Below are positions 6,463-20,088 of a stretch of 64,000 nucleotides of DNA, piece after piece; position 1 is the stretch's first letter, and each line of letters begins with the position of its first letter. The position numbers and the translations under genes were made by a program. The notes under the pieces were generated by a model. The model saw only the letters and a program-made list of their open reading frames with translations, searched no databases and had not been told where the DNA came from. The DNA is taken from the sequence record ON190025.1. One strand, given 5' to 3'.

Positions 6463-8001
6463 TTATGAGAAAATAAAGTCGATTGATTCACTCGTTGAGT
6501 TATACACAATCGACGCTGCACCGTCGTCGAATTTCATTTCACTTCGACCATCGTGCTGAACTACGCTACCGTTATACGTTATATTGTCTGTATGCGTCGC
6601 AGCAGCGTTTGACTTGATTTTTAATATGTTAACACCCGCTTCTAAATTAACCGCTTCTACAGTGCTACTAGAGTCGGTATCCGCTGAAACAAACACGCTT
6701 GCAGGAGTAACAAGTTCAGTGTCACTACTTAACTTCAGATAGCGACTTGTAGATGAACCGTAGATAAGATTACCATTCATCGTCAAGTTACCCGTCATCG
6801 AATCACCTGCGGCGTTTACGTAACGACCGTCTAGATTCGTCGTGAAGTTTCCAGTGTGCAGTACAACGTTATCGTTGAATTTCAATGCGCTTGCACTGTT
6901 CTGAGAACCACCATCAATAGTCAACGAGTTTAACCCTGCAATCAAGTTCAAATGACGAGTTGTTTCGTTGTCGTTCGCGTCTGCTTCGATAGTAAGATCG
7001 CCAATTGATGACATGTGTATGTCAGTACTATTGAAATCTAAGAAATATTCATTAGTTCGGCGAATACCAAATCCCACATCAAACAATAAATGCCCAGACA
7101 TCGTATCACCTGATTTAAGTACACGAGTATTCGCGTTATCATTTGCTGTCTTAGCGGCAGTCGCAGATGCATATACAGTCGAGCTTGTTGTGCTAACCGA
7201 GTCGGTGATGTTTCTGTTATTCGGGCTGAATACGCGATTGCCTCGCTCTCTCAATTCACGTTCAGCGTCTACATACGAATTTGCACCAACGCCAACAGTC
7301 AATGCAGTTATCTGACTACTATCTTCGATTTTGAATGCTTTGTCGGTACTTTCACTTGAAAGATATAACACAGCCCCAGCACCTATACCGCGAGTCTGAA
7401 AGTTCCACGGTCTAGATGAAGGGAAACGAAGTTGTCTCGACCCCTCGTTAGTCTCAGGCGCAGTCAATGTATTGAAAATACCCGTCATCGAGTCACCCGA
7501 TACATTCAAATAGCGACCATCAAGTAAAGACTGATTTCCAGTATGCAACATAGTTCGATGTGTTGAACCGTCGTAATACTGCATGTTCCCTAAGTGATCA
7601 AATGACCAGTATCGACCAGATTGTTTAGATTCAATCATAAACTCGTTACCGTCAGCACCAGATGATGTCCCGCGATATTTCAAGTTCCACGCATATGCAT
7701 TATTACCTAGATAAATCCATGCGTCGGCGACCGCAAGATTGTCACCTTGACCATCTGAGTAACCGCCATCAAATCTCATCACTTCGCCAAGCGCATTAAC
7801 TTTCAATACACCTGACATTGAATCACCAGCACGCTTAACAACAGATTCGGTTAAATCGGTATGCGGGTCTGGCTTGTCGTGTTCTGTATAAATTTTGTAG
7901 CCGTTGTAAAGAACAGTTTCACCTTGTGGGTCAAATCGTAAATTACCTCCGTGCCATACTAGTTTACCGCCAATTGCGGTAGTTGATCTTAATTCTGCCA
8001 T
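6463..8001 (-). CDS. Long tail fibre subunit, N-terminus paralogous to the 1141 gene
   Basis: Same N-terminus MAELRSTTAIGG; repeated LDGRYxNxxGDSMTG fibre motifs. Confidence 0.8.
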   Translation of the reverse strand: MAELRSTTAIGGKLVWHGGNLRFDPQGETVLYNGYKIYTEHDKPDPHTDLTESVVKRAGDSMSGVLKVNALGEVMRFDGGYSDGQGDNLAVADAWIYLGNNAYAWNLKYRGTSSGADGNEFMIESKQSGRYWSFDHLGNMQYYDGSTHRTMLHTGNQSLLDGRYLNVSGDSMTGIFNTLTAPETNEGSRQLRFPSSRPWNFQTRGIGAGAVLYLSSESTDKAFKIEDSSQITALTVGVGANSYVDAERELRERGNRVFSPNNRNITDSVSTTSSTVYASATAAKTANDNANTRVLKSGDTMSGHLLFDVGFGIRRTNEYFLDFNSTDIHMSSIGDLTIEADANDNETTRHLNLIAGLNSLTIDGGSQNSASALKFNDNVVLHTGNFTTNLDGRYVNAAGDSMTGNLTMNGNLIYGSSTSRYLKLSSDTELVTPASVFVSADTDSSSTVEAVNLEAGVNILKIKSNAAATHTDNITYNGSVVQHDGRSEMKFDDGAASIVYNSTSESIDFIFS

Positions 8002-8057: not shown

Positions 8058-8084
8058 AAAAAAGGGCGCTATTTGCGCCCTTTT
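8058..8084 (-). terminator. Rho-independent terminator
   Basis: GGGCGC/GCGCCC stem flanked by A6 and T4. Confidence 0.75.
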
Positions 8085-8593
8085 GTTTTTTGTTTCTTTG
8101 CTTTTCGTTTAGCCCGTCTAAGTTCTTTTCGTTTAGCGATTTTATCTGCTCTTCGAACTGCGTCGTAATCAGCAGCACAAGACGCAGCAAACGCATCAGG
8201 TTTGAACACGGGCTCTTGACCAACATATCCCAATATAGTACCTTTAGCTTCGTTATAGGCAACGTGAGATTTGTGTGTAGGGTCAGGGTTGATGTCAACG
8301 TGAACTTCAAAGCCTCTAGTACCGCACATTGGCTTAACCATTAGTGCAGTTTCACCCGCTTTGTATACTTCATTCATCAATCGACTTCTGATACCATCTT
8401 TACATGATAAGTATGCAGGTTCAGTCTCAACTGCTTTAAACACTTGAGCACCTTTACTACCTTCAAGATGAATTATGATCACAGTCGCGTAACTAATCAT
8501 GTCACTTTTACGCTTACTATCACACCCAACGTATATTGTGCTATTTGGATGACTGTTATTGATAGCTGTTTCTATCGCTTCCCAATCGAACAT
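8069..8593 (-). CDS. RNase H-fold protein, YkuK/DUF458-like
   Basis: IYVGCDS, YATVIIIH, EVHVDIN and KPDAFAASCAAD motifs; basic C-terminal tail; GAGG SD before ATG 8593. Confidence 0.75.
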   Translation of the reverse strand: MFDWEAIETAINNSHPNSTIYVGCDSKRKSDMISYATVIIIHLEGSKGAQVFKAVETEPAYLSCKDGIRSRLMNEVYKAGETALMVKPMCGTRGFEVHVDINPDPTHKSHVAYNEAKGTILGYVGQEPVFKPDAFAASCAADYDAVRRADKIAKRKELRRAKRKAKKQKTKGRK

Positions 8594-8606
8594 TTTCACC
8601 TCTTAC

Positions 8607-8633
8607 AAAAAAGGGCAGCACAATGCCGCCCTT
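8607..8633 (-). terminator. Rho-independent terminator after the DUF2828 gene
   Basis: GGGCGGCA/TGCTGCCC stem then T6 on minus strand. Confidence 0.75.
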
Positions 8634-8642
8634 ATCACTTAT

Positions 8643-10079
8643 TTAAAAGCTGTAGCGTTCGACGCCTACAGTTTTCATCATGATCTTGACTGGCTCAAGC
8701 TCACCACTCAACAGTGAAGTCAAGATAGATGGGCTACAACCAGATACCAGTGCAGTGCCCGCTTCGCCAGCTTTAACCGGAACGTTGCCAAGACGACCAC
8801 GAATGTTCCAAAAGACCAGTTGTGGCATTTCATAACCAGCACGTGCGTACTTGGCTTTGATTGCATCGAAGTTCGCAGGTTCACCGCGACCGTACCATCC
8901 ACCACCAGTGTTTGCTTGATCGAATTCCATGTCACTCATGATAAGCAACTTGGTTGGCATATCTTCTTGTGAAAGATTTGCACGCTTCGCACGTTCTAAC
9001 AGAACATCAAAGCACTTACCGATGTTCGTGCTCATGTCTTCGCCTGAACGATTCATGTTATCAAGACGCTCTTTCAATGAAGAGCCGCGCAACTGGTGGA
9101 AGTGCGGGTCGCTTGAGAACGAAATGAACTGATCTTTGAAGATGCCTTCATTGCGTTCAGCAACATAAATCCCAAGAGACATTGCAACTTGCTTACAAGT
9201 CACACCTGAATGGTCTGTACCTGCGTTAATTGGCGTGCTCATAGAGCCAGACACGTCAACAACAGGGATGATGCGTTCATCAGAACCTTCCATGTAGTTT
9301 GGCAGAGCTTTCCATTGCTCGTTCGCTACAGACGCATTACCGTGACTAACGCTCTTAACGACATCGTATGGGAACAGTGCGCCAGCGTTGATCTTCGCTT
9401 CACCTTTTTGAAGTGACTCGATGTAGCTTGTGTAACGAGCTGAAGCGTTACGACCGAATGCTTGTTGATAACGAGCAGACGCTACAGAAGGCAACTTACC
9501 GAAGTCGATTGCATCCCATTTTTGCGCACACATCTTCTGCTCAACAGTGTCAGACAGAAGCGACAGAATCTTACGCCACTGCTTCGCAGTTACGCCAAGA
9601 GACTTGATTGTGCGCTTGAACACATGACCGTTTTTGCTGTTTTCACGTGGGAACCACTTCGCAGCAAGACCATTCTTGTCATTGACAATTGCGTTCGACC
9701 ACATTGTAATCGCATCTTTTTCAAGACGTGTACCGAAAGCAGAAATCAAGTCATCGTAACGACCTAGTTCTGGAATTTTCGACATTACAGCACGAGCTAC
9801 GTCAGGCTGTTCATTACAAAGTTTAGTGAATAGTGTACGGAAAGTACCACGTTCACCCGCACCACCTCGAACGTCACGAGACCACAAAAGAATGCGAGTC
9901 GCTAGTTCTGGGTTTTCTGCAAACGCACGACCGAACAGCGTTTTAGACTGATCGTTGCCACGCATAGCAGCAATACCGAAGAACAAGTTTAGACACTCGT
10001 TACCTGAAGTGCTGTGAGTAACTGCACCGTTTGCTGTGCGTGAATCGTTTGTTTGCATTGCGTTCATAAATACTGACAT
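8643..10079 (-). CDS. DUF2828-family protein (helical TROVE/Ro60-like N-terminal region plus C-terminal vWA)
   Basis: TANGAVTHSTSGNECLNLFF, RDVRGGAGER, LAAKWFPRE, KINAGALFPY; MIDAS DVSGSM, SDMEFD, VFWNIR. The TROVE relationship is inferred. Confidence 0.85.
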   Translation of the reverse strand: MSVFMNAMQTNDSRTANGAVTHSTSGNECLNLFFGIAAMRGNDQSKTLFGRAFAENPELATRILLWSRDVRGGAGERGTFRTLFTKLCNEQPDVARAVMSKIPELGRYDDLISAFGTRLEKDAITMWSNAIVNDKNGLAAKWFPRENSKNGHVFKRTIKSLGVTAKQWRKILSLLSDTVEQKMCAQKWDAIDFGKLPSVASARYQQAFGRNASARYTSYIESLQKGEAKINAGALFPYDVVKSVSHGNASVANEQWKALPNYMEGSDERIIPVVDVSGSMSTPINAGTDHSGVTCKQVAMSLGIYVAERNEGIFKDQFISFSSDPHFHQLRGSSLKERLDNMNRSGEDMSTNIGKCFDVLLERAKRANLSQEDMPTKLLIMSDMEFDQANTGGGWYGRGEPANFDAIKAKYARAGYEMPQLVFWNIRGRLGNVPVKAGEAGTALVSGCSPSILTSLLSGELEPVKIMMKTVGVERYSF

Positions 10080-10115
10080 TGTTCATTTCCTCATAATTAA
10101 TTGCTGTAAAATGTC
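10075..10115 (-). promoter_or_regulatory. 5' UTR copy of the helix-NN-NCWGCAA motif pairing over the DUF2828 start codon
   Basis: GACATT-TT-ACAGCAA-TTAATTATGAGGAAATGAAC-AATGTC; AATGTC contains the ATG and the GAGG SD is in the loop. Confidence 0.8.
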
Positions 10116-10127
10116 GTTGATGTGATG

Positions 10128-10156
10128 ATTATACACGGATTTTAACCCGTGTAAAC
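10128..10156 (-). promoter_or_regulatory. Sigma70-type early promoter of the DUF2828 gene, palindromic spacer
   Basis: GTTTAC-17 nt-TATAAT; TACACGG...CCGTGTA inverted repeat. Confidence 0.8.
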
Positions 10157-10168
10157 AATTATTTTCAA

Positions 10169-10489
10169 TTATTTGTAATTGTGATGGCGAGTGATATTCG
10201 TACCGTTTTTGAATATTTCAACTGCCACATAACCACCAGTTTCATAGCAAGTGCGTAAATTTCGGTAGCCGTACTCTTCAAAGAATGCACGGATGAAACT
10301 AGAACCTTTCTTATCACAATCGCTAATATGAATTGGTACTTTGATTTTAATCGGGAAAAAAGCCCCGTTTTCAACTGCATGAGTGAATTCTTTTTCACAT
10401 TCAGCATTATAGTGTTCGCTAAGAACTTTACGAGCTACCTGCTCCCGTTCATTAATTTGCTTTGAAAGTTCATCATGACTAAGCATCAT
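10169..10489 (-). CDS. Hypothetical protein, apparent paralogue of 10486-10821
   Basis: 106 aa; FPIxIxV...CD...GY/FxN pattern shared with neighbour. Confidence 0.7.
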   Translation of the reverse strand: MMLSHDELSKQINEREQVARKVLSEHYNAECEKEFTHAVENGAFFPIKIKVPIHISDCDKKGSSFIRAFFEEYGYRNLRTCYETGGYVAVEIFKNGTNITRHHNYK

Positions 10490-10821
10490 TGAAACCCCGC
10501 TTGTTTATTTTCTCGAATTGTCAATTTCACAAACGAATATGAGTAGTCTCTCATATCACGTGGGTCGCCAGAATAACGACCGAACTGTGCATCGAAATTG
10601 TGAAATCCCTCGCGTTTCATGACGCTTTTAATAAGAGTCATCATTTCATCACAACACTCGTTATGCTCAAGATTCACTTGAATTGTAATCGGGAACTGAA
10701 ATCCCGAAACACCACCGATCTTACGCTCAATTGATTTGCGCATTTCAACGACGAACTGCTCTTCGCGTTTCGAGCGATTCTGTTTGACTTGTTGAGTTAA
10801 AACATCGTATAGATTATTCAT
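10486..10821 (-). CDS. Hypothetical protein
   Basis: 111 aa, ATGA-type overlaps with neighbours. Confidence 0.75.
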   Translation of the reverse strand: MNNLYDVLTQQVKQNRSKREEQFVVEMRKSIERKIGGVSGFQFPITIQVNLEHNECCDEMMTLIKSVMKREGFHNFDAQFGRYSGDPRDMRDYSYSFVKLTIRENKQAGFQ

Positions 10822-11186
10822 AGATATTCCTTAATATCTTTTGAAAAGTGACGAATACATGAACTATCAAGACGTTTACGACCATCACCGTCAATATCAG
10901 GTAATGTGTACCCATCATTGAATGGCTGACCGCTTGATTTAGCGATTTCGTATGCATCACTTCGATTGAAATATTCACCGCAGTAATTGATGAAACCTTG
11001 ACCACGATCACCAAGCTCGTTACGATGCTCATATGTACAGCCAAGTTCTTTCAATAGCTTAAACACGCCTTGCATGTTTCGTCCGAAATGACAGCTATCT
11101 GCGACTACGATCTCTCGCTGCTCACCATTCGGCATAGTCACTCGAATCGCATTAGCAGCACAAGAAATTACATTTACGTGCGACAT
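10818..11186 (-). CDS. Conserved-type phage hypothetical protein
   Basis: 122 aa, QGFINYCGEYFNRSDAYEIA motif, coupled overlaps. Confidence 0.75.
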   Translation of the reverse strand: MSHVNVISCAANAIRVTMPNGEQREIVVADSCHFGRNMQGVFKLLKELGCTYEHRNELGDRGQGFINYCGEYFNRSDAYEIAKSSGQPFNDGYTLPDIDGDGRKRLDSSCIRHFSKDIKEYL

Positions 11187-11536
11187 GTATCGTACCTCAT
11201 AAAAATAGAACCAACACGTTTGTATTGATTAGAATACATTAACAGTTTTGTCATTTTGCTGTGAGCAACAGGGTTGCTTGTTACAAGAACGACAGTTCGT
11301 GGGTAATTGCGATGGTCGATGGCATGTGATAGAATATCATAACCCTCTCGACCGACAGCATCACCTAAATCATTGTCCATGAAAAGTGTAATGTCAGTAA
11401 GATTCGTATACTTGACGAATTTCATGCCGTCGTCGAATGTACGAATCACGCGCTTTTCATCGTCTAGAATATTCGGTTTGGTGAACTTATTAATGTCACG
11501 TAAGTCATCAATCATTACAAACATAGTATTTCTCAT
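11174..11536 (-). CDS. Cyclic-phosphate-processing receiver (cREC)-like domain protein
   Basis: IDDLR, MDNDLG, GYD and TSNPVA match the LDDxR/SLDHDLG/GYD/HSxNPxG pattern of this stand-alone receiver family. Confidence 0.65.
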   Translation of the reverse strand: MRNTMFVMIDDLRDINKFTKPNILDDEKRVIRTFDDGMKFVKYTNLTDITLFMDNDLGDAVGREGYDILSHAIDHRNYPRTVVLVTSNPVAHSKMTKLLMYSNQYKRVGSIFMRYDTCRT

Positions 11537-11586
11537 TAGTTATTAGTGCTAAATACATCATACAGGTTTAATGAGTGGAAGTCAAC

Positions 11587-11958
11587 ATGAACGACGAAAA
11601 AATTATTTCTTTCGAACAGTATCTAAATGAGGGATGGTTTGAAAGGCAATGGTCGCGATACAAAGCAGGTGCTGACTCGCGTAGTATTAAGAAACTGGCC
11701 AAGATGCATACAAAGCTACTGCATATTGAGCAAAAAGCCAAGCAAAACAAATATCGTTATGAAGCAGTTCGATACAATTACGAACACATCAAGATGAATG
11801 TTTTAGATGCTAAGAAGCTCATCAATAAGTTGAGATATAAGAAAGGTATTAGCGATGAGCTAATAATGGCAATGGATAAGTTAGATGTCGAGCTAGATCG
11901 TCTCAACGACTTTGCGGTTGAAGGTCTTCATCAGCTAATGATTCAACACAAGTTATAA
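11587..11958 (+). CDS. Late protein, possible capsid-internal protein
   Basis: CTAAATA upstream; N-terminus IISFEQYLNE/G resembles a T4 capsid-targeting sequence. Confidence 0.65.
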   Translation: MNDEKIISFEQYLNEGWFERQWSRYKAGADSRSIKKLAKMHTKLLHIEQKAKQNKYRYEAVRYNYEHIKMNVLDAKKLINKLRYKKGISDELIMAMDKLDVELDRLNDFAVEGLHQLMIQHKL

Positions 11959-11961
11959 AAT

Positions 11962-11986
11962 AAAAGCCCCATTTAGGGGCTTTTTT
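11962..11986. terminator. Bidirectional terminator between convergent genes
   Basis: AAAA-GCCCC-ATTTA-GGGGC-TTTTTT. Confidence 0.8.
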
Positions 11987-11987
11987 G

Positions 11988-12200
11988 TTAGTATGAATGG
12001 CGCAACTTTTTTTCGATCATTCGATCTACAATCGTGGAGTACATAAGATGTTCTTTGTAATATTTCTCATCAACTCGGTTACATTGAAAGTCTCGAAAAT
12101 CTTTGCGCAGACGTGCAATAAATTTATTCAGTGTTTTGCGCACTTTGCAAACTTCAGACAATTCCATGCTTTTTAGTGTTTCTTCAGAAAGTATTTCCAT
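11988..12200 (-). CDS. Hypothetical protein
   Basis: 70 aa, GAGG SD. Confidence 0.65.
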   Translation of the reverse strand: MEILSEETLKSMELSEVCKVRKTLNKFIARLRKDFRDFQCNRVDEKYYKEHLMYSTIVDRMIEKKLRHSY

Positions 12201-12738: not shown

Positions 12739-12828
12739 GAGATTTCTCCAATTGATTTGAGTTCATCTATATTTAGAATCACATCTAAATGTTTCTTTAG
12801 ACTATATCAATTATCAAACGCCATAAAC

Positions 12829-12853
12829 AAAAAAACCTGCTCAAGGCAGGTTT
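12829..12853 (-). terminator. Terminator ending the tRNA/ncRNA operon
   Basis: AAACCTGC-CTTGA-GCAGGTTT then T run. Confidence 0.85.
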
Positions 12854-12868
12854 AGATGTGCAATACAC

Positions 12869-13113
12869 AGACATTCGAGAAGTGTTTTATCGTCTTTCCT
12901 TAAATCTCATTTGACTATAACGATGTTTCTCATCGGAAAAATACTCATGTTTCGGCATGAGTCCTATTTCGTTTGACAGTACGAACACCGTCTTAATGGT
13001 CATTTCCTACCACGAGAATGCGACAGGCTCACGTCATCACTGAGAAAGCAGCTAGTGCGCCTCATTACTATTAAAGTTTGCTTTGATTTTGTAATGATTG
13101 CTGTACAATGTCT
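12869..13113 (-). ncRNA. ~245 nt structured RNA closed by the motif helix
   Basis: AGACATT-GT-ACAGCAA...AATGTCT; internal hairpins TCATTAC/GTAATGA, ACTCATG/CATGAGT, CGATG/CATCG, TTCGT/ACGAA; no ORF in the track. Confidence 0.75.
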
Positions 13114-14857: not shown

Positions 14858-15085
14858 AGACAATACCGAAGTGTTTTTTCGTCTTTTGCATAAATCGGAG
14901 TTGACTAGCTTATTGATTCTCAACAAGCAAATATCGTCTGTTTCAGCGACGCGCCTATCTGACTATTTCTAGACAGAGAGAATCTTTCCTTTCAAGCTGC
15001 GCCTAAGCAAGCTCAGGTTAAAATCAGCCCAGGTTAAGATCATCACTTCTTTTAAGTAATTTCAATTGTTTGCTGTATATTGTCT
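14858..15085 (-). ncRNA. ~228 nt structured RNA closed by the motif helix, paralogous to 12869-13113
   Basis: AGACAAT-AT-ACAGCAA...ATTGTCT; shares AAGACGAWAAAACACTTC (17/18) and AGTGATGA with the 12869 RNA. Confidence 0.75.
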
Positions 15086-15696: not shown

Positions 15697-15808
15697 GAGT
15701 GTTATTACTAGCGTCGTCCAGACCAGTGATACCAACACTGAAAGGGAATCGAACCCTAAACATTTCTTTCCGATAAGAATATTAGTAAATTGTTTGCTGA
15801 AAACACTC
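15697..15808 (-). ncRNA. YrlA-like circularly permuted tRNA mimic (candidate phage Y RNA)
   Basis: GAGTGT-TT-TCAGCAA...AGGG-TTCGATT-CCCT (T arm), CAGTG-TTGGTAT-CACTG (closed acceptor), GTC-TGGAC-GAC (D arm)...ACACTC. Confidence 0.75.
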
Positions 15809-16218: not shown

Positions 16219-16276
16219 AGTAATCCTTTTTGCTTTTTCCAAATAAAAGTTTTGTATTGTTTGCTGTAAGATTACT
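16219..16276 (-). ncRNA. 58 nt RNA consisting mainly of the motif
   Basis: AGTAATC-TT-ACAGCAA...GCAAAAAG-GATTACT. Confidence 0.7.
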
Positions 16277-16980: not shown

Positions 16981-17067
16981 AGCTTGCGTTCTTTGGTCTG
17001 TTTATCGCTGTCTGAACTGAGTTCGCCGAGCGATCAATAGATTAAGTTAAATTGCAGTATGCAAGCT
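16981..17067 (-). ncRNA. 87 nt motif-closed RNA
   Basis: AGCTTGC-AT-ACTGCAA...ATCGCT/AGCGAT hairpin...AAAGAAC-GCAAGCT. Confidence 0.7.
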
Positions 17068-18678: not shown

Positions 18679-18915
18679 TTAACCTAAGTGTTTTCGCTTG
18701 TTCATTTCAGCAAGAATTTCGTCGTTGTAGTGCTTATTAAGCTCAACGAATTTCTTGTGCTGATCTGAAGTCAATTCGTTTGTATCGTTCAGATGCTTCA
18801 AAAACCCAAGAGGCTTACGAAACGACTTGCGATATTCATTCAGACGCTCATCTGTTAGATTGCGCAATTGTTTCGGAGTCAGTAACGTTTTGTTGATATT
18901 AAATGTTCCGCTCAT
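18679..18915 (-). CDS. Hypothetical protein
   Basis: MSGTFNINK..., 78 aa, GAGG SD. Confidence 0.65.
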   Translation of the reverse strand: MSGTFNINKTLLTPKQLRNLTDERLNEYRKSFRKPLGFLKHLNDTNELTSDQHKKFVELNKHYNDEILAEMNKRKHLG

Positions 18916-18941
18916 GTTATACCTCACTAGTTTATCAAAAA

Positions 18942-19057
18942 TGGTAGTCGGGGCTGGATTCGAACCAGCGACCACGTGCTTAACAGGCAATTGAAGGAGT
19001 GCTGGAGCGATACTTGTCAGTATCATTCTTCGTGCTCTACCACTGAGCTACCCGACT
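18942..19057 (-). ncRNA. tRNA-shaped RNA, anticodon loop replaced by a motif-bearing insert (CCA present)
   Basis: AGTCGGG/CCCGACT-A-CCA, normal D and T arms; insert GATACT-GACA-AGTATC-GCT-CCAGCAC. Confidence 0.75.
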
Positions 19058-19093
19058 ATGAATTATTTAACTTTGAATTTCAAATTTCGATAT

Positions 19094-19354
19094 TCAAAGT
19101 TTCGTTTGTCTTTTTTTACTGTAATACGTATCCCAATCAATAGAAACAGGACAGTTCTTACTACCCACACGAGATAAGAAAACGTCGTGAGTGTCTTTGT
19201 AAGCTTCTCTGAGAGACTTTACTTGTTTCTCATGATGAGTTATGTACTCAGCACACGCTTTGTTGTACTCAGCTTTAGAGAAGCGTTCATCGCCCGTGAA
19301 ATTACCGTTTAGATACGGTCGAATAACACGAACACGTTCTTTAGACCATCCCAT
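19094..19354 (-). CDS. Hypothetical protein
   Basis: 86 aa ORF. Confidence 0.65.
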   Translation of the reverse strand: MGWSKERVRVIRPYLNGNFTGDERFSKAEYNKACAEYITHHEKQVKSLREAYKDTHDVFLSRVGSKNCPVSIDWDTYYSKKRQTKL

Positions 19355-19378
19355 ACTAAAACTATTTTCAATTTATTT

Positions 19379-19456
19379 TGGTGACCCCAACAGGACTCGA
19401 ACCTGTAACCTACCGATTATGAGTCGGTTGCTCTAACCAAGTTGAGCTATAGGGCC
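19379..19456 (-). tRNA. tRNA(CAT), most like Ile2 (lysidine type)
   Basis: GGCCC acceptor and GACTCATAATC arm resemble bacterial tRNA-Ile2. Confidence 0.85.
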
Positions 19457-19457
19457 A

Positions 19458-19826
19458 TTATTTCTCTAGAAATCGACCTACTTTAGCAGCGAAGATGTTT
19501 GCTTCTTCTGTAATACGAGCAGTCGATTTAATTTGATGAAATGCGTCTTGTTGATGCAGCAAATCGAGCTTATCTGCACATTTCATCAATTCTTTTATAG
19601 TTTGCATAATCTCAATATTATCAAACTGACTTGTATCAGGGTGATAATTTAGATTGTCTAATATCGGCAGAACTTGTTGATAGCAACCCATGCCAATGAA
19701 GTTTATCATAAGTCTATACTGCATTTCAACAGCAAATGTACAATATTTTCGAAGATTGCGCTTTACAATCTCACAACGATGCAATATACAATCAAGTTCG
19801 TCATTTATGTCATTAAACTTATTCAT
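19458..19826 (-). CDS. Hypothetical protein
   Basis: MNKFNDINDEL..., 122 aa. Confidence 0.65.
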   Translation of the reverse strand: MNKFNDINDELDCILHRCEIVKRNLRKYCTFAVEMQYRLMINFIGMGCYQQVLPILDNLNYHPDTSQFDNIEIMQTIKELMKCADKLDLLHQQDAFHQIKSTARITEEANIFAAKVGRFLEK

Positions 19827-19840
19827 AAACCCTCGAAAAT

Positions 19841-19965
19841 TGGTGGAGAGTACGGGATTTGAACCACGTGACAAAAAGATTTACCTAGTTATTAAGGTTT
19901 GCAGCATGAATGCTTGTCAGTATTCTTTAACATTCTTTTGCTCTACCAGACTGAGCTAACTCTCC
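19841..19965 (-). ncRNA. tRNA-shaped RNA with motif-bearing insert (CCA present)
   Basis: GGAGAGT/ACTCTCC-A-CCA; AAAAGA/TCTTTT stem encloses GAATACT-GACA-AGCATTC-AT-GCTGCAA. Confidence 0.75.
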
Positions 19966-19975
19966 GGAATTTGAA

Positions 19976-20088
19976 GGTGAAGTGCAGGACTCGAACCTGC
20001 GACCTCCGGCGTGCATGTGAATGCAGAATGAAATCTTATCAGACTTCGTTTTTTGGCCGGCGTTCTAACCTACTGAACTAACTTCACC
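19976..20088 (-). ncRNA. tRNA-shaped RNA with motif-bearing insert (no CCA)
   Basis: GGTGAAGT/ACTTCACC; insert AAAAAAC-GAAGTCT-GATA-AGATTTC-AT-TCTGCAT. Confidence 0.75.

Follow-up and report, generated by a model that had tools for sequence, protein, structure and literature searches.

The leader of the DUF2828 gene of Vibrio phage PVA23, a KVP40-like Schizotequatrovirus, carries a miniature copy of the RNA module that closes five RNAs in the tRNA cluster of the phage. We analysed a 64,000-nt stretch of record ON190025.1 (hereafter the window; its position 8000 is record position 70000), in which this gene occupies 8643..10079 and encodes a 478-aa protein with the Pfam domains DUF2828 and DUF7788. 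All leader, gene and RNA A-E coordinates refer to the minus strand of the window. We propose, with a probability of roughly 55%, that this Ro60-like protein recognises the module both on Y-like RNAs and on its own leader, and that the resulting translational autorepression is titrated by the RNAs.

A two-strand module in the leader and the tRNA cluster

Promoter, module and ribosome-binding site follow one another closely in the leader. The promoter, GTTTAC-17-TATAAT, is sigma-70-like and of the T4 early type (10128..10156; -35 at 10156-10151, -10 TATAAT at 10133-10128). It is the best sigma-70-like match between 9900 and 15400, agreeing with the consensus at 11 of 12 positions, and is kept in KVP40, VS2, R10Z, VH7D, F86, 1.081.O, L013 and L096 (L numbers are our labels for loci). 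Transcription is predicted to start at about A10121, an A lying 7 nt past the -10 element and 5-6 nt 5' of the motif; the original prediction for this window had placed the promoter accurately, with a start about 6 nt before GACATT-TT-ACAGCAA. The motif consists of the 5' strand GACAUU (10110..10115), which covaries with the 3' strand across orthologues, a TT linker (10109-10108) and, 2 nt past the 5' strand, a single-stranded ACAGCAA element (10101..10107) conserved in leaders and in RNAs A-E. As that prediction had also noted, the partner strand AAUGUC (10080-10075) holds the start codon (10079-10077), and the Shine-Dalgarno sequence GAGG (10092-10089), 9 nt 5' of the ATG, sits in the 29-nt loop of the module. 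Both elements are placed as an operator would place them.

The six GACAUU/AAUGUC pairs form with ensemble probabilities of 0.58-0.71 in the predicted transcript, and the helix alone contributes -2.7 kcal/mol. We relied on pair probabilities and covariation in place of a minimum free energy (MFE) z-score because the z-score gauges total energy and not a specific helix.

The leader region holds further sequence features. An inverted repeat, ACACGG-N8-CCGTGT, lies within the -35/-10 spacer (10134-10151, minus strand) and is partly kept, in altered form, in F86 and 1.081.O; a relation to the promoter-stem-loop cassettes (PeSLs) known from T4-type phages is possible. Read on the opposite strand, the motif gives TTGCTGTAA, which looks like a T4 MotA box, a candidate that we rejected by eye: it has no -10 element at the right spacing and would be antisense to all genes.

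The tRNA cluster encodes RNAs closed by the same two-strand module, bearing out a likeness to cluster RNAs that had been claimed for the leader. In general form the module reads G-N5 / NN / ACAGCAA ... N5'-C / UG or AG (WG), and in this form it closes RNAs A-E. A second exact copy of the 13 specified motif bases lies at 13112-13098 and a one-mismatch copy at 15084-15070, both with a matching 3' partner; each heads a conserved non-coding segment of ~230-285 nt, the paralogues A and B, ending in AATGTC or ATTGTC. RNA A (12828..13113, ~285 nt), delimited with a seven-phage alignment, RNAalifold, and terminator and module scans, begins 12 nt past tRNA-Ser, is closed by AGACAUU (13113-13107) paired with AAUGUCU (12875-12869), and ends at an intrinsic terminator that the terminator scan places at 12853-12833. 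RNA B (14859..15084; alignment, RNAalifold and module scan) is closed by GACAAU / AUUGUC, for which its orthologues in F86 and L221 have the compensatory GGCAAU / AUUGCC. RNAalifold on alignments of 6-7 phages closes both RNAs with the module helix, and their internal helices covary.

RNAs C, D and E were located by a relaxed scan. RNA C (15697..15808, ~112 nt), between tRNA-Gln and tRNA-Thr, has the module GAGUGU-UU-UCAGCAA ... ACACUC-AG and is YrlA-like because it carries an internal T-arm-like GGGUUCGAUUCCC. RNA D (16220..16275), a 56-nt hairpin between tRNA-Trp and tRNA-Asn, reads GUAAUC-UU-ACAGCAA ... GAUUAC-UG; KVP40 has the compensatory pair GCAAUC / GAUUGC. RNA E (16982..17066, 85 nt), between tRNA-Tyr and tRNA-Met, reads GCUUGC-AU-ACUGCAA ... 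GCAAGC-UG. All five lie in inter-tRNA spacers, on the minus strand, and begin 6-12 nt past the upstream tRNA, except that B begins ~65 nt past tRNA-Arg. They are 3-7 kb upstream of the DUF2828 gene and on its strand. Helix geometry, ACAGCAA and the WG tail are common to leader and RNAs, and linkage and fold suggest that the RNAs are ligands of the protein.

Mononucleotide shuffles of the window yield few modules (0-3, mean ~0.6). Our scan of PVA23, which covered the window and record positions 1-50000, returned two further sites in the window, each requiring a G-U pair, and one further, motif-poor site (GAAGAT/ATCTTC with TCTGCAT) in record positions 1-50000. Unconstrained MFE folds close 14 more module RNAs in relatives by the module helix, among them those orthologous to RNA C in D480, F86 and 1.081.O. 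We regard the cluster RNAs as real, conserved, module-closed RNAs. At permissive thresholds no Rfam 15 family covers the leader or RNAs A-E, and the RNA C orthologue of D480 reaches only 12 bits (E = 8.6) against the YrlA model. A candidate sixth RNA at 13285-13253 was dropped, its core motif not being kept in KVP40.

Other structured elements were seen in the window. Three tRNA-like genes on the minus strand (18945-19057, 19844-19965 and 19976-20087) score 50-56 bits with the Rfam tRNA model and have a ~40-nt insert in place of the anticodon arm; the hairpin GAAnnC-UGAYAA-GnnUUC is common to all three, and the KVP40 record has a 116-nt 'tRNA-Pseudo-3' at the corresponding position. A weak YrlA match lies at 19940-20004. 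A strong hairpin resembling a bidirectional terminator, AAAAGCCCC-N5-GGGGCTTTT, occupies 11962-11984, between small convergent genes that lie upstream of the DUF2828 operon.

The module across DUF2828 loci

Comparative sequence evidence makes it close to certain that the module is under selection as an RNA helix and is tied specifically to DUF2828 genes. With the loci of distant relatives taken from public assemblies and IMG/VR, we found it in 18 of 85 distinct DUF2828 leaders, among them those of 14 of the 16 relatives with at least 57% identity and of a second clade at ~50% identity. Promoter, motif and AATGTC are conserved in the KVP40 group, while flanks and loops drift. The 3' strand falls inside the 30S footprint in all 18 leaders: it contains the AUG, as in the KVP40 type, overlaps the Shine-Dalgarno sequence or ends 2-17 nt before the ATG, the extremes running from 5 nt inside the open reading frame (ORF) to 17 nt before it. 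Leaders lacking the module include those of D480, L012, L097, the Aeromonas, Felix-O1-like, Listeria and mycobacteriophages, and most relatives at ~50% identity. The Aeromonas, Felix-O1-like, Listeria and mycobacteriophage loci have no leader copy, yet they keep module-bearing non-coding RNAs (ncRNAs).

The stem covaries. We observed GACATT/AATGTC, GACATA/TATGTC, GAAATT/AATTTC or GATTTC, GAATTA/TAATTC, GAATTT/AAATTC, GAGTTA/TAATTC and GATTTA/TAAATC; in L014, with the compensatory GACATA/TATGTC, the base change at -1 of the ATG has its counterpart in the 5' strand. CAGCA is invariant in 15 aligned leaders, and the ends of the single-stranded element vary (TCAGCAA in L014, ACAGCAT or ACAGCAC in four leaders). 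Because a MAFFT alignment of all leaders misregistered the 3' strands, covariation was counted on an alignment fitted by a covariance model (CM), in which 91% of cells are paired and double changes occur at five of the seven pairs. Covariation scores 0.528 there; shuffles give 0.119, with 0 of 500 attaining the observed value, and slid partners give 0.02-0.11.

The module marks DUF2828 genes almost exclusively. A CM built from six leaders not of the KVP40 type retrieves the window leader (10071-10119) with 27 bits and E = 0.08 in a search of 2.4 Mb; the same model finds the L087 leader at E = 0.002 and those of KVP40, VS2, F86, 1.081.O and L096 marginally, at E 0.05-0.3. Among ORFs of at least 80 aa in the DUF2828 loci studied, 17 of 2,059 have the module in their 120-nt leader; 16 of these are DUF2828 genes, and the seventeenth lies just past a module RNA. 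An exact 15-mer scan of IMG/VR (14 specified bases) gave at least 118 stretches, none with a DUF2828 gene among the matches listed, and these are most likely chance matches. A site at 9189 of the Aeromonas locus L008 was discarded, being on the opposite strand and having no partner.

Module RNAs also stand beside DUF2828 genes in other phages, with the ACAGCAA element present in the modules of P100-like Listeria, Felix-O1-like, Aeromonas and mycobacteriophage loci. Listeria phage LMTA-57 (L217; 3665-3925 and 6850-8061) has three tandem module hairpins or RNAs within 340 nt directly upstream of the gene, and 1.3 kb downstream a gene annotated as a tRNA-splicing ligase, which we take to be of the RtcB type. 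Directly downstream of the gene, the Felix-O1-like coliphage EC6 has four module RNAs and mycobacteriophage Snenia three; Aeromonas phage avDM12 has a single one, within its tRNA cluster, and several uncultured phages have two or three next to the gene. Enclosed in the middle Snenia RNA is a match to the Rfam YrlA model that stays below threshold, with 39 bits where the gathering score is 69 (E = 3e-7, 451 nt searched). The ribosome site of the DUF2828 gene bears no module in either LMTA-57 or EC6. The 30-kb tRNA region of phage T5 (L224), with 25 tRNAs and 8 stable RNAs, contains no module, a protein search for DUF2828 in T5 not having been made; the T5 'stable RNAs with unknown functions' (8285-11950 and 18849-19567) are a class apart from RNAs A-E.

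Some loci show other elements directly upstream of the gene. L048 (3279-3396), L077 (~1530-1651) and L087 (~9830-9952) have tRNA-like elements with a T-arm and a D-arm, which end in ATTCTGA right ahead of the Shine-Dalgarno sequence; that of L048 weakly matches YrlA. Possibly these elements represent the leader module in a long-range form. In Vibrio phage D480 (L003) a homing endonuclease gene on the opposite strand (11368-11994) is inserted at this position.

A Ro60-like protein and its relatives

The DUF2828/DUF7788 product is shown by its modelled fold to be a phage Ro60-like protein. The AlphaFold2 (AF2) model of the 478-aa protein (pLDDT 80, pTM 0.81) has an alpha-helical ring closed by a C-terminal von Willebrand factor A (vWA) domain, the combination of helical repeat ring and vWA domain that characterises Ro60 structures. 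Its top four Foldseek matches in the PDB, 9kop, 9l5y, 2nvo and 1yvr, are all full-length Ro60 structures (E 1e-6 to 3e-5, TMq up to 0.59), representing Thermus phage phiLo Ro60, D. radiodurans Rsr and Xenopus Ro. The likeness is visible from the fold search only, because sequence and profile searches of the PDB gave nothing significant: phmmer and a profile search returned no significant Ro60 match, the phiLo TROVE protein standing at E ~1. Pfam found only DUF2828 and DUF7788 in the protein and no TROVE domain, so that by sequence it has neither of the usual marks of Ro60. PHROG 850 'RNA-binding protein' matches the product. In RefSeq the KVP40 orthologue is called 'RNA-binding protein'; mycobacteriophage homologues bear the name 'Ro-like RNA binding protein'. 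More than 7,000 protein clusters match a DUF2828 query at E <= 1e-10 (8,000 candidates scored), and DUF2828-type genes are carried by phages of Proteobacteria, Firmicutes and Actinobacteria.

The PVA23 locus resembles a Ro60-Y RNA system in architecture and departs from it in sequence. Ro60 proteins bind Y RNAs at the terminal stem, chiefly via the 5' strand, and YrlA RNAs have been predicted beside mycobacteriophage Ro genes (PMC4201824). The Ro60 protein of phage phiLo binds two adjacent Y-like RNAs (PMC12135203). With such pairs of Ro60/Rsr and Y RNA (YrlA RF02553; phiLo Yrl1/Yrl2), PVA23 shares the ring-plus-vWA fold, small same-strand ncRNAs next to the gene, pairing of the ncRNA 5' and 3' ends in a stem with a conserved 5'-side motif, and T-arms in some RNAs (RNA C and the Snenia RNA with the below-threshold YrlA match). 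The arrangement typical of Y RNA genes, in which an ncRNA with a motif-bearing end stem neighbours the Ro gene and shares its strand, is found for RNAs A-E and in EC6, LMTA-57 and Snenia. Unlike its counterparts, however, the PVA23 protein belongs to Pfam DUF2828/DUF7788 and not to TROVE, and its motif is ACAGCAA beside a G-N5/N5'-C helix and not YrlA's GNCGAA(N)G or CGAA; RNAs A-E have neither the YrlA motif nor an Rfam match.

The closest described phages have suspected RNA partners. In Listeria phage CKA15, three unannotated RNAs of very high abundance lie near an Rsr-like gene, whose protein was detected in virions (PMC12282133), and coliphage Bas63 gp130, a Ro60-like homologue, is reported to counter the ppl defence system (bioRxiv 10.1101/2024.10.10.617714). 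The RNAs near the Ro-like genes of CKA15 and Bas63 were guessed by the authors to be Y RNAs (PMC12282133; bioRxiv 10.1101/2024.10.10.617714). As in PVA23, the homologous proteins are encoded next to tRNA clusters, and the related phages LMTA-57 and EC6 have three and four module RNAs beside the gene; the two papers, in contrast to the present analysis, define no RNA motif and no autoregulation. Our literature search found no description of the ACAGCAA motif or of a leader operator in work on Ro60/Y RNA phages, nor any Ro60-family gene reported to carry a Y-RNA-like operator in the leader of its own mRNA.

Translational autoregulation by mimicry is known from E. coli ribosomal-protein operons, the ThrRS/thrS operator, T4 gp43, gp32 and RegA, and the MS2 coat protein. 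Like these systems, PVA23 would have on the protein's own mRNA a small copy of the main RNA ligand at the ribosome-binding site, with which free ligand is expected to compete. The MS2 coat protein operator is the replicase start hairpin and contains the AUG, as does the KVP40-type leader hairpin. The PVA23 protein family and operator sequence, in contrast, are unrelated to those of the known systems, the competing ligands would be phage-encoded Y-like RNAs and not rRNA, tRNA or DNA, and repression is here something that we infer.

The gene has a conserved downstream neighbour in one group of phages. A PF04308 RNaseH_like (DUF458) gene (8069..8599, minus strand) follows the DUF2828 gene in PVA23 and lies 3' of it in all Vibrio T4-like relatives (L011, L012, L014, L221), despite a differing wider context. 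Its position is conserved in these relatives only.

Proposed autorepression weighed against its alternatives

In the circuit that we propose, the DUF2828/DUF7788 protein would be a Ro60-like RNA-binding protein whose ligands, A-E, would be small Y-RNA-like transcripts freed from the tRNA cluster. The 5' and 3' termini of the transcripts would pair as a 6-7 bp helix (G-N5 with N5'-C), with ACAGCAA on the 5' side and UG/AG on the 3' side. The early mRNA would begin 5-6 nt ahead of a miniature copy of the module, in which the start codon region (A-AUG-UC) forms the 3' strand and the Shine-Dalgarno sequence lies in the loop. Free protein above the capacity of the cluster RNAs would clamp the weak leader helix, hide AUG and Shine-Dalgarno sequence from the 30S subunit and so repress its own translation; cluster RNAs competing for the protein would relieve the repression. 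Because the leader hairpin copies the closing stem of the RNAs and includes the start codon, the protein probably stops its own production when the RNAs are saturated.

The evidence favours this circuit for part of the family. Autoregulation, as the original prediction had it, draws support from the module's place at the ribosome-binding site, its covariation, its near-exclusive association with DUF2828 genes and the Ro60-like fold; the leader copy is clade-limited. The motif had been expected upstream of DUF2828 genes in other genomes, and it recurs there with a covarying stem in the 18 leaders described above and is absent from the other 67 of 85, so that autoregulation is not family-wide. 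Further points weigh against autorepression. D480, a natural loss-of-operator variant, has lost the leader module by the endonuclease insertion, only TTACAGCA remaining before the ATG, and its gene persists. A TTGACA-17-TATAAC match seen by eye in L067 overlaps the module and could place the transcript start inside it. The helix is short, and in total folding energy the PVA23 leader does not stand out from shuffles (MFE z = +0.69). The alignment on which covariation was counted had been fitted to the structure by the CM, which favours structure, and AUGUC in the 3' strand is partly explained by a conserved Met-Ser N-terminus. The interpretation is supported as far as sequence can carry it; that the protein reads the module, that its binding represses and that the RNAs titrate it are inferences beyond the reach of sequence.

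Binding of the protein to the leader could have an outcome other than repression: mRNA stabilisation, translational activation, co-translational assembly of a ribonucleoprotein, or release of a mini Y-like hairpin from the mRNA 5' end, which would recall the ncRNA arrays directly upstream of the gene in the Listeria phage, L065, L048 and L077. The tandem module RNAs found immediately upstream in other lineages speak for such an outcome, since group-2 leader hairpins could be the last member of an array of this kind; so does the position of the hairpin at the extreme 5' end of the mRNA, where a hairpin can protect transcripts from 5'-end-dependent decay. We consider it unlikely all the same, because the placement of the 3' strand within the 30S footprint in 18 of 18 leaders is one that an operator needs and that a stabiliser or by-product does not. 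A shared processing or stability signal of cluster RNAs and mRNA, read by some other factor (a host ribonuclease or chaperone, PNPase, or the phage DUF458 protein), seems to us less probable again. The cluster RNAs must indeed be excised from tRNA precursors, and the DUF458 gene is a conserved neighbour in the Vibrio T4-like phages, but the module tracks DUF2828 genes through phages of Actinobacteria, Firmicutes and Proteobacteria, whose host factors differ, and 16 of its 17 leader occurrences are at DUF2828 genes. The DUF458 nuclease itself was rejected as the reader for its distribution: confined to the Vibrio T4-like subset, the gene is absent from other DUF2828 phage loci, including most that bear the module, and its product is probably accessory.

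The poorest odds go to a protein-independent hairpin that sequesters the AUG or Shine-Dalgarno sequence in cis and owes its likeness to the RNAs to common descent or repeat recombination. The helix does have appreciable predicted occupancy alone, and repeats in the hyperplastic regions of T4-type phages do reportedly recombine. A bare hairpin, however, needs no ACAGCAA core, and this core, with CAGCA invariant, is kept between leaders whose stems have only GA...UC in common and which have unrelated loops; a helix of -2.7 kcal/mol is moreover too weak to block initiation alone.

Translational autorepression by the DUF2828 protein, if true, would be the first autoregulatory circuit of a Ro60-family protein that we are aware of. 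It would join two known kinds of system, Ro60-Y RNA particles and operator-ligand mimicry, and would add a new example of the latter in a T4-type phage. Beyond PVA23, there is a possibility, to which we give a little less than even odds, that a large and so far undescribed class of phage Y-like RNAs partnering DUF2828-type Ro60-like proteins is universally recognised through the module, and that in at least two phage clades competition between these RNAs and the mimic in the mRNA sets the protein's level.

Ro60-like genes adjoin tRNA clusters in hundreds of sequenced phages, among them Felix O1-like, P100-like and KVP40-like phages and cluster L mycobacteriophages, and their RNA partners have so far mostly been guessed. 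A short, covarying, searchable module would name these partners, would account for several RNAs of phage tRNA regions listed as 'stable RNAs of unknown function', and would supply a defined binding site for biochemistry and structure work. It would also provide a testable dosage circuit, of protein against Y-like RNAs against its own leader, in a family one member of which has already been implicated in counter-defence.

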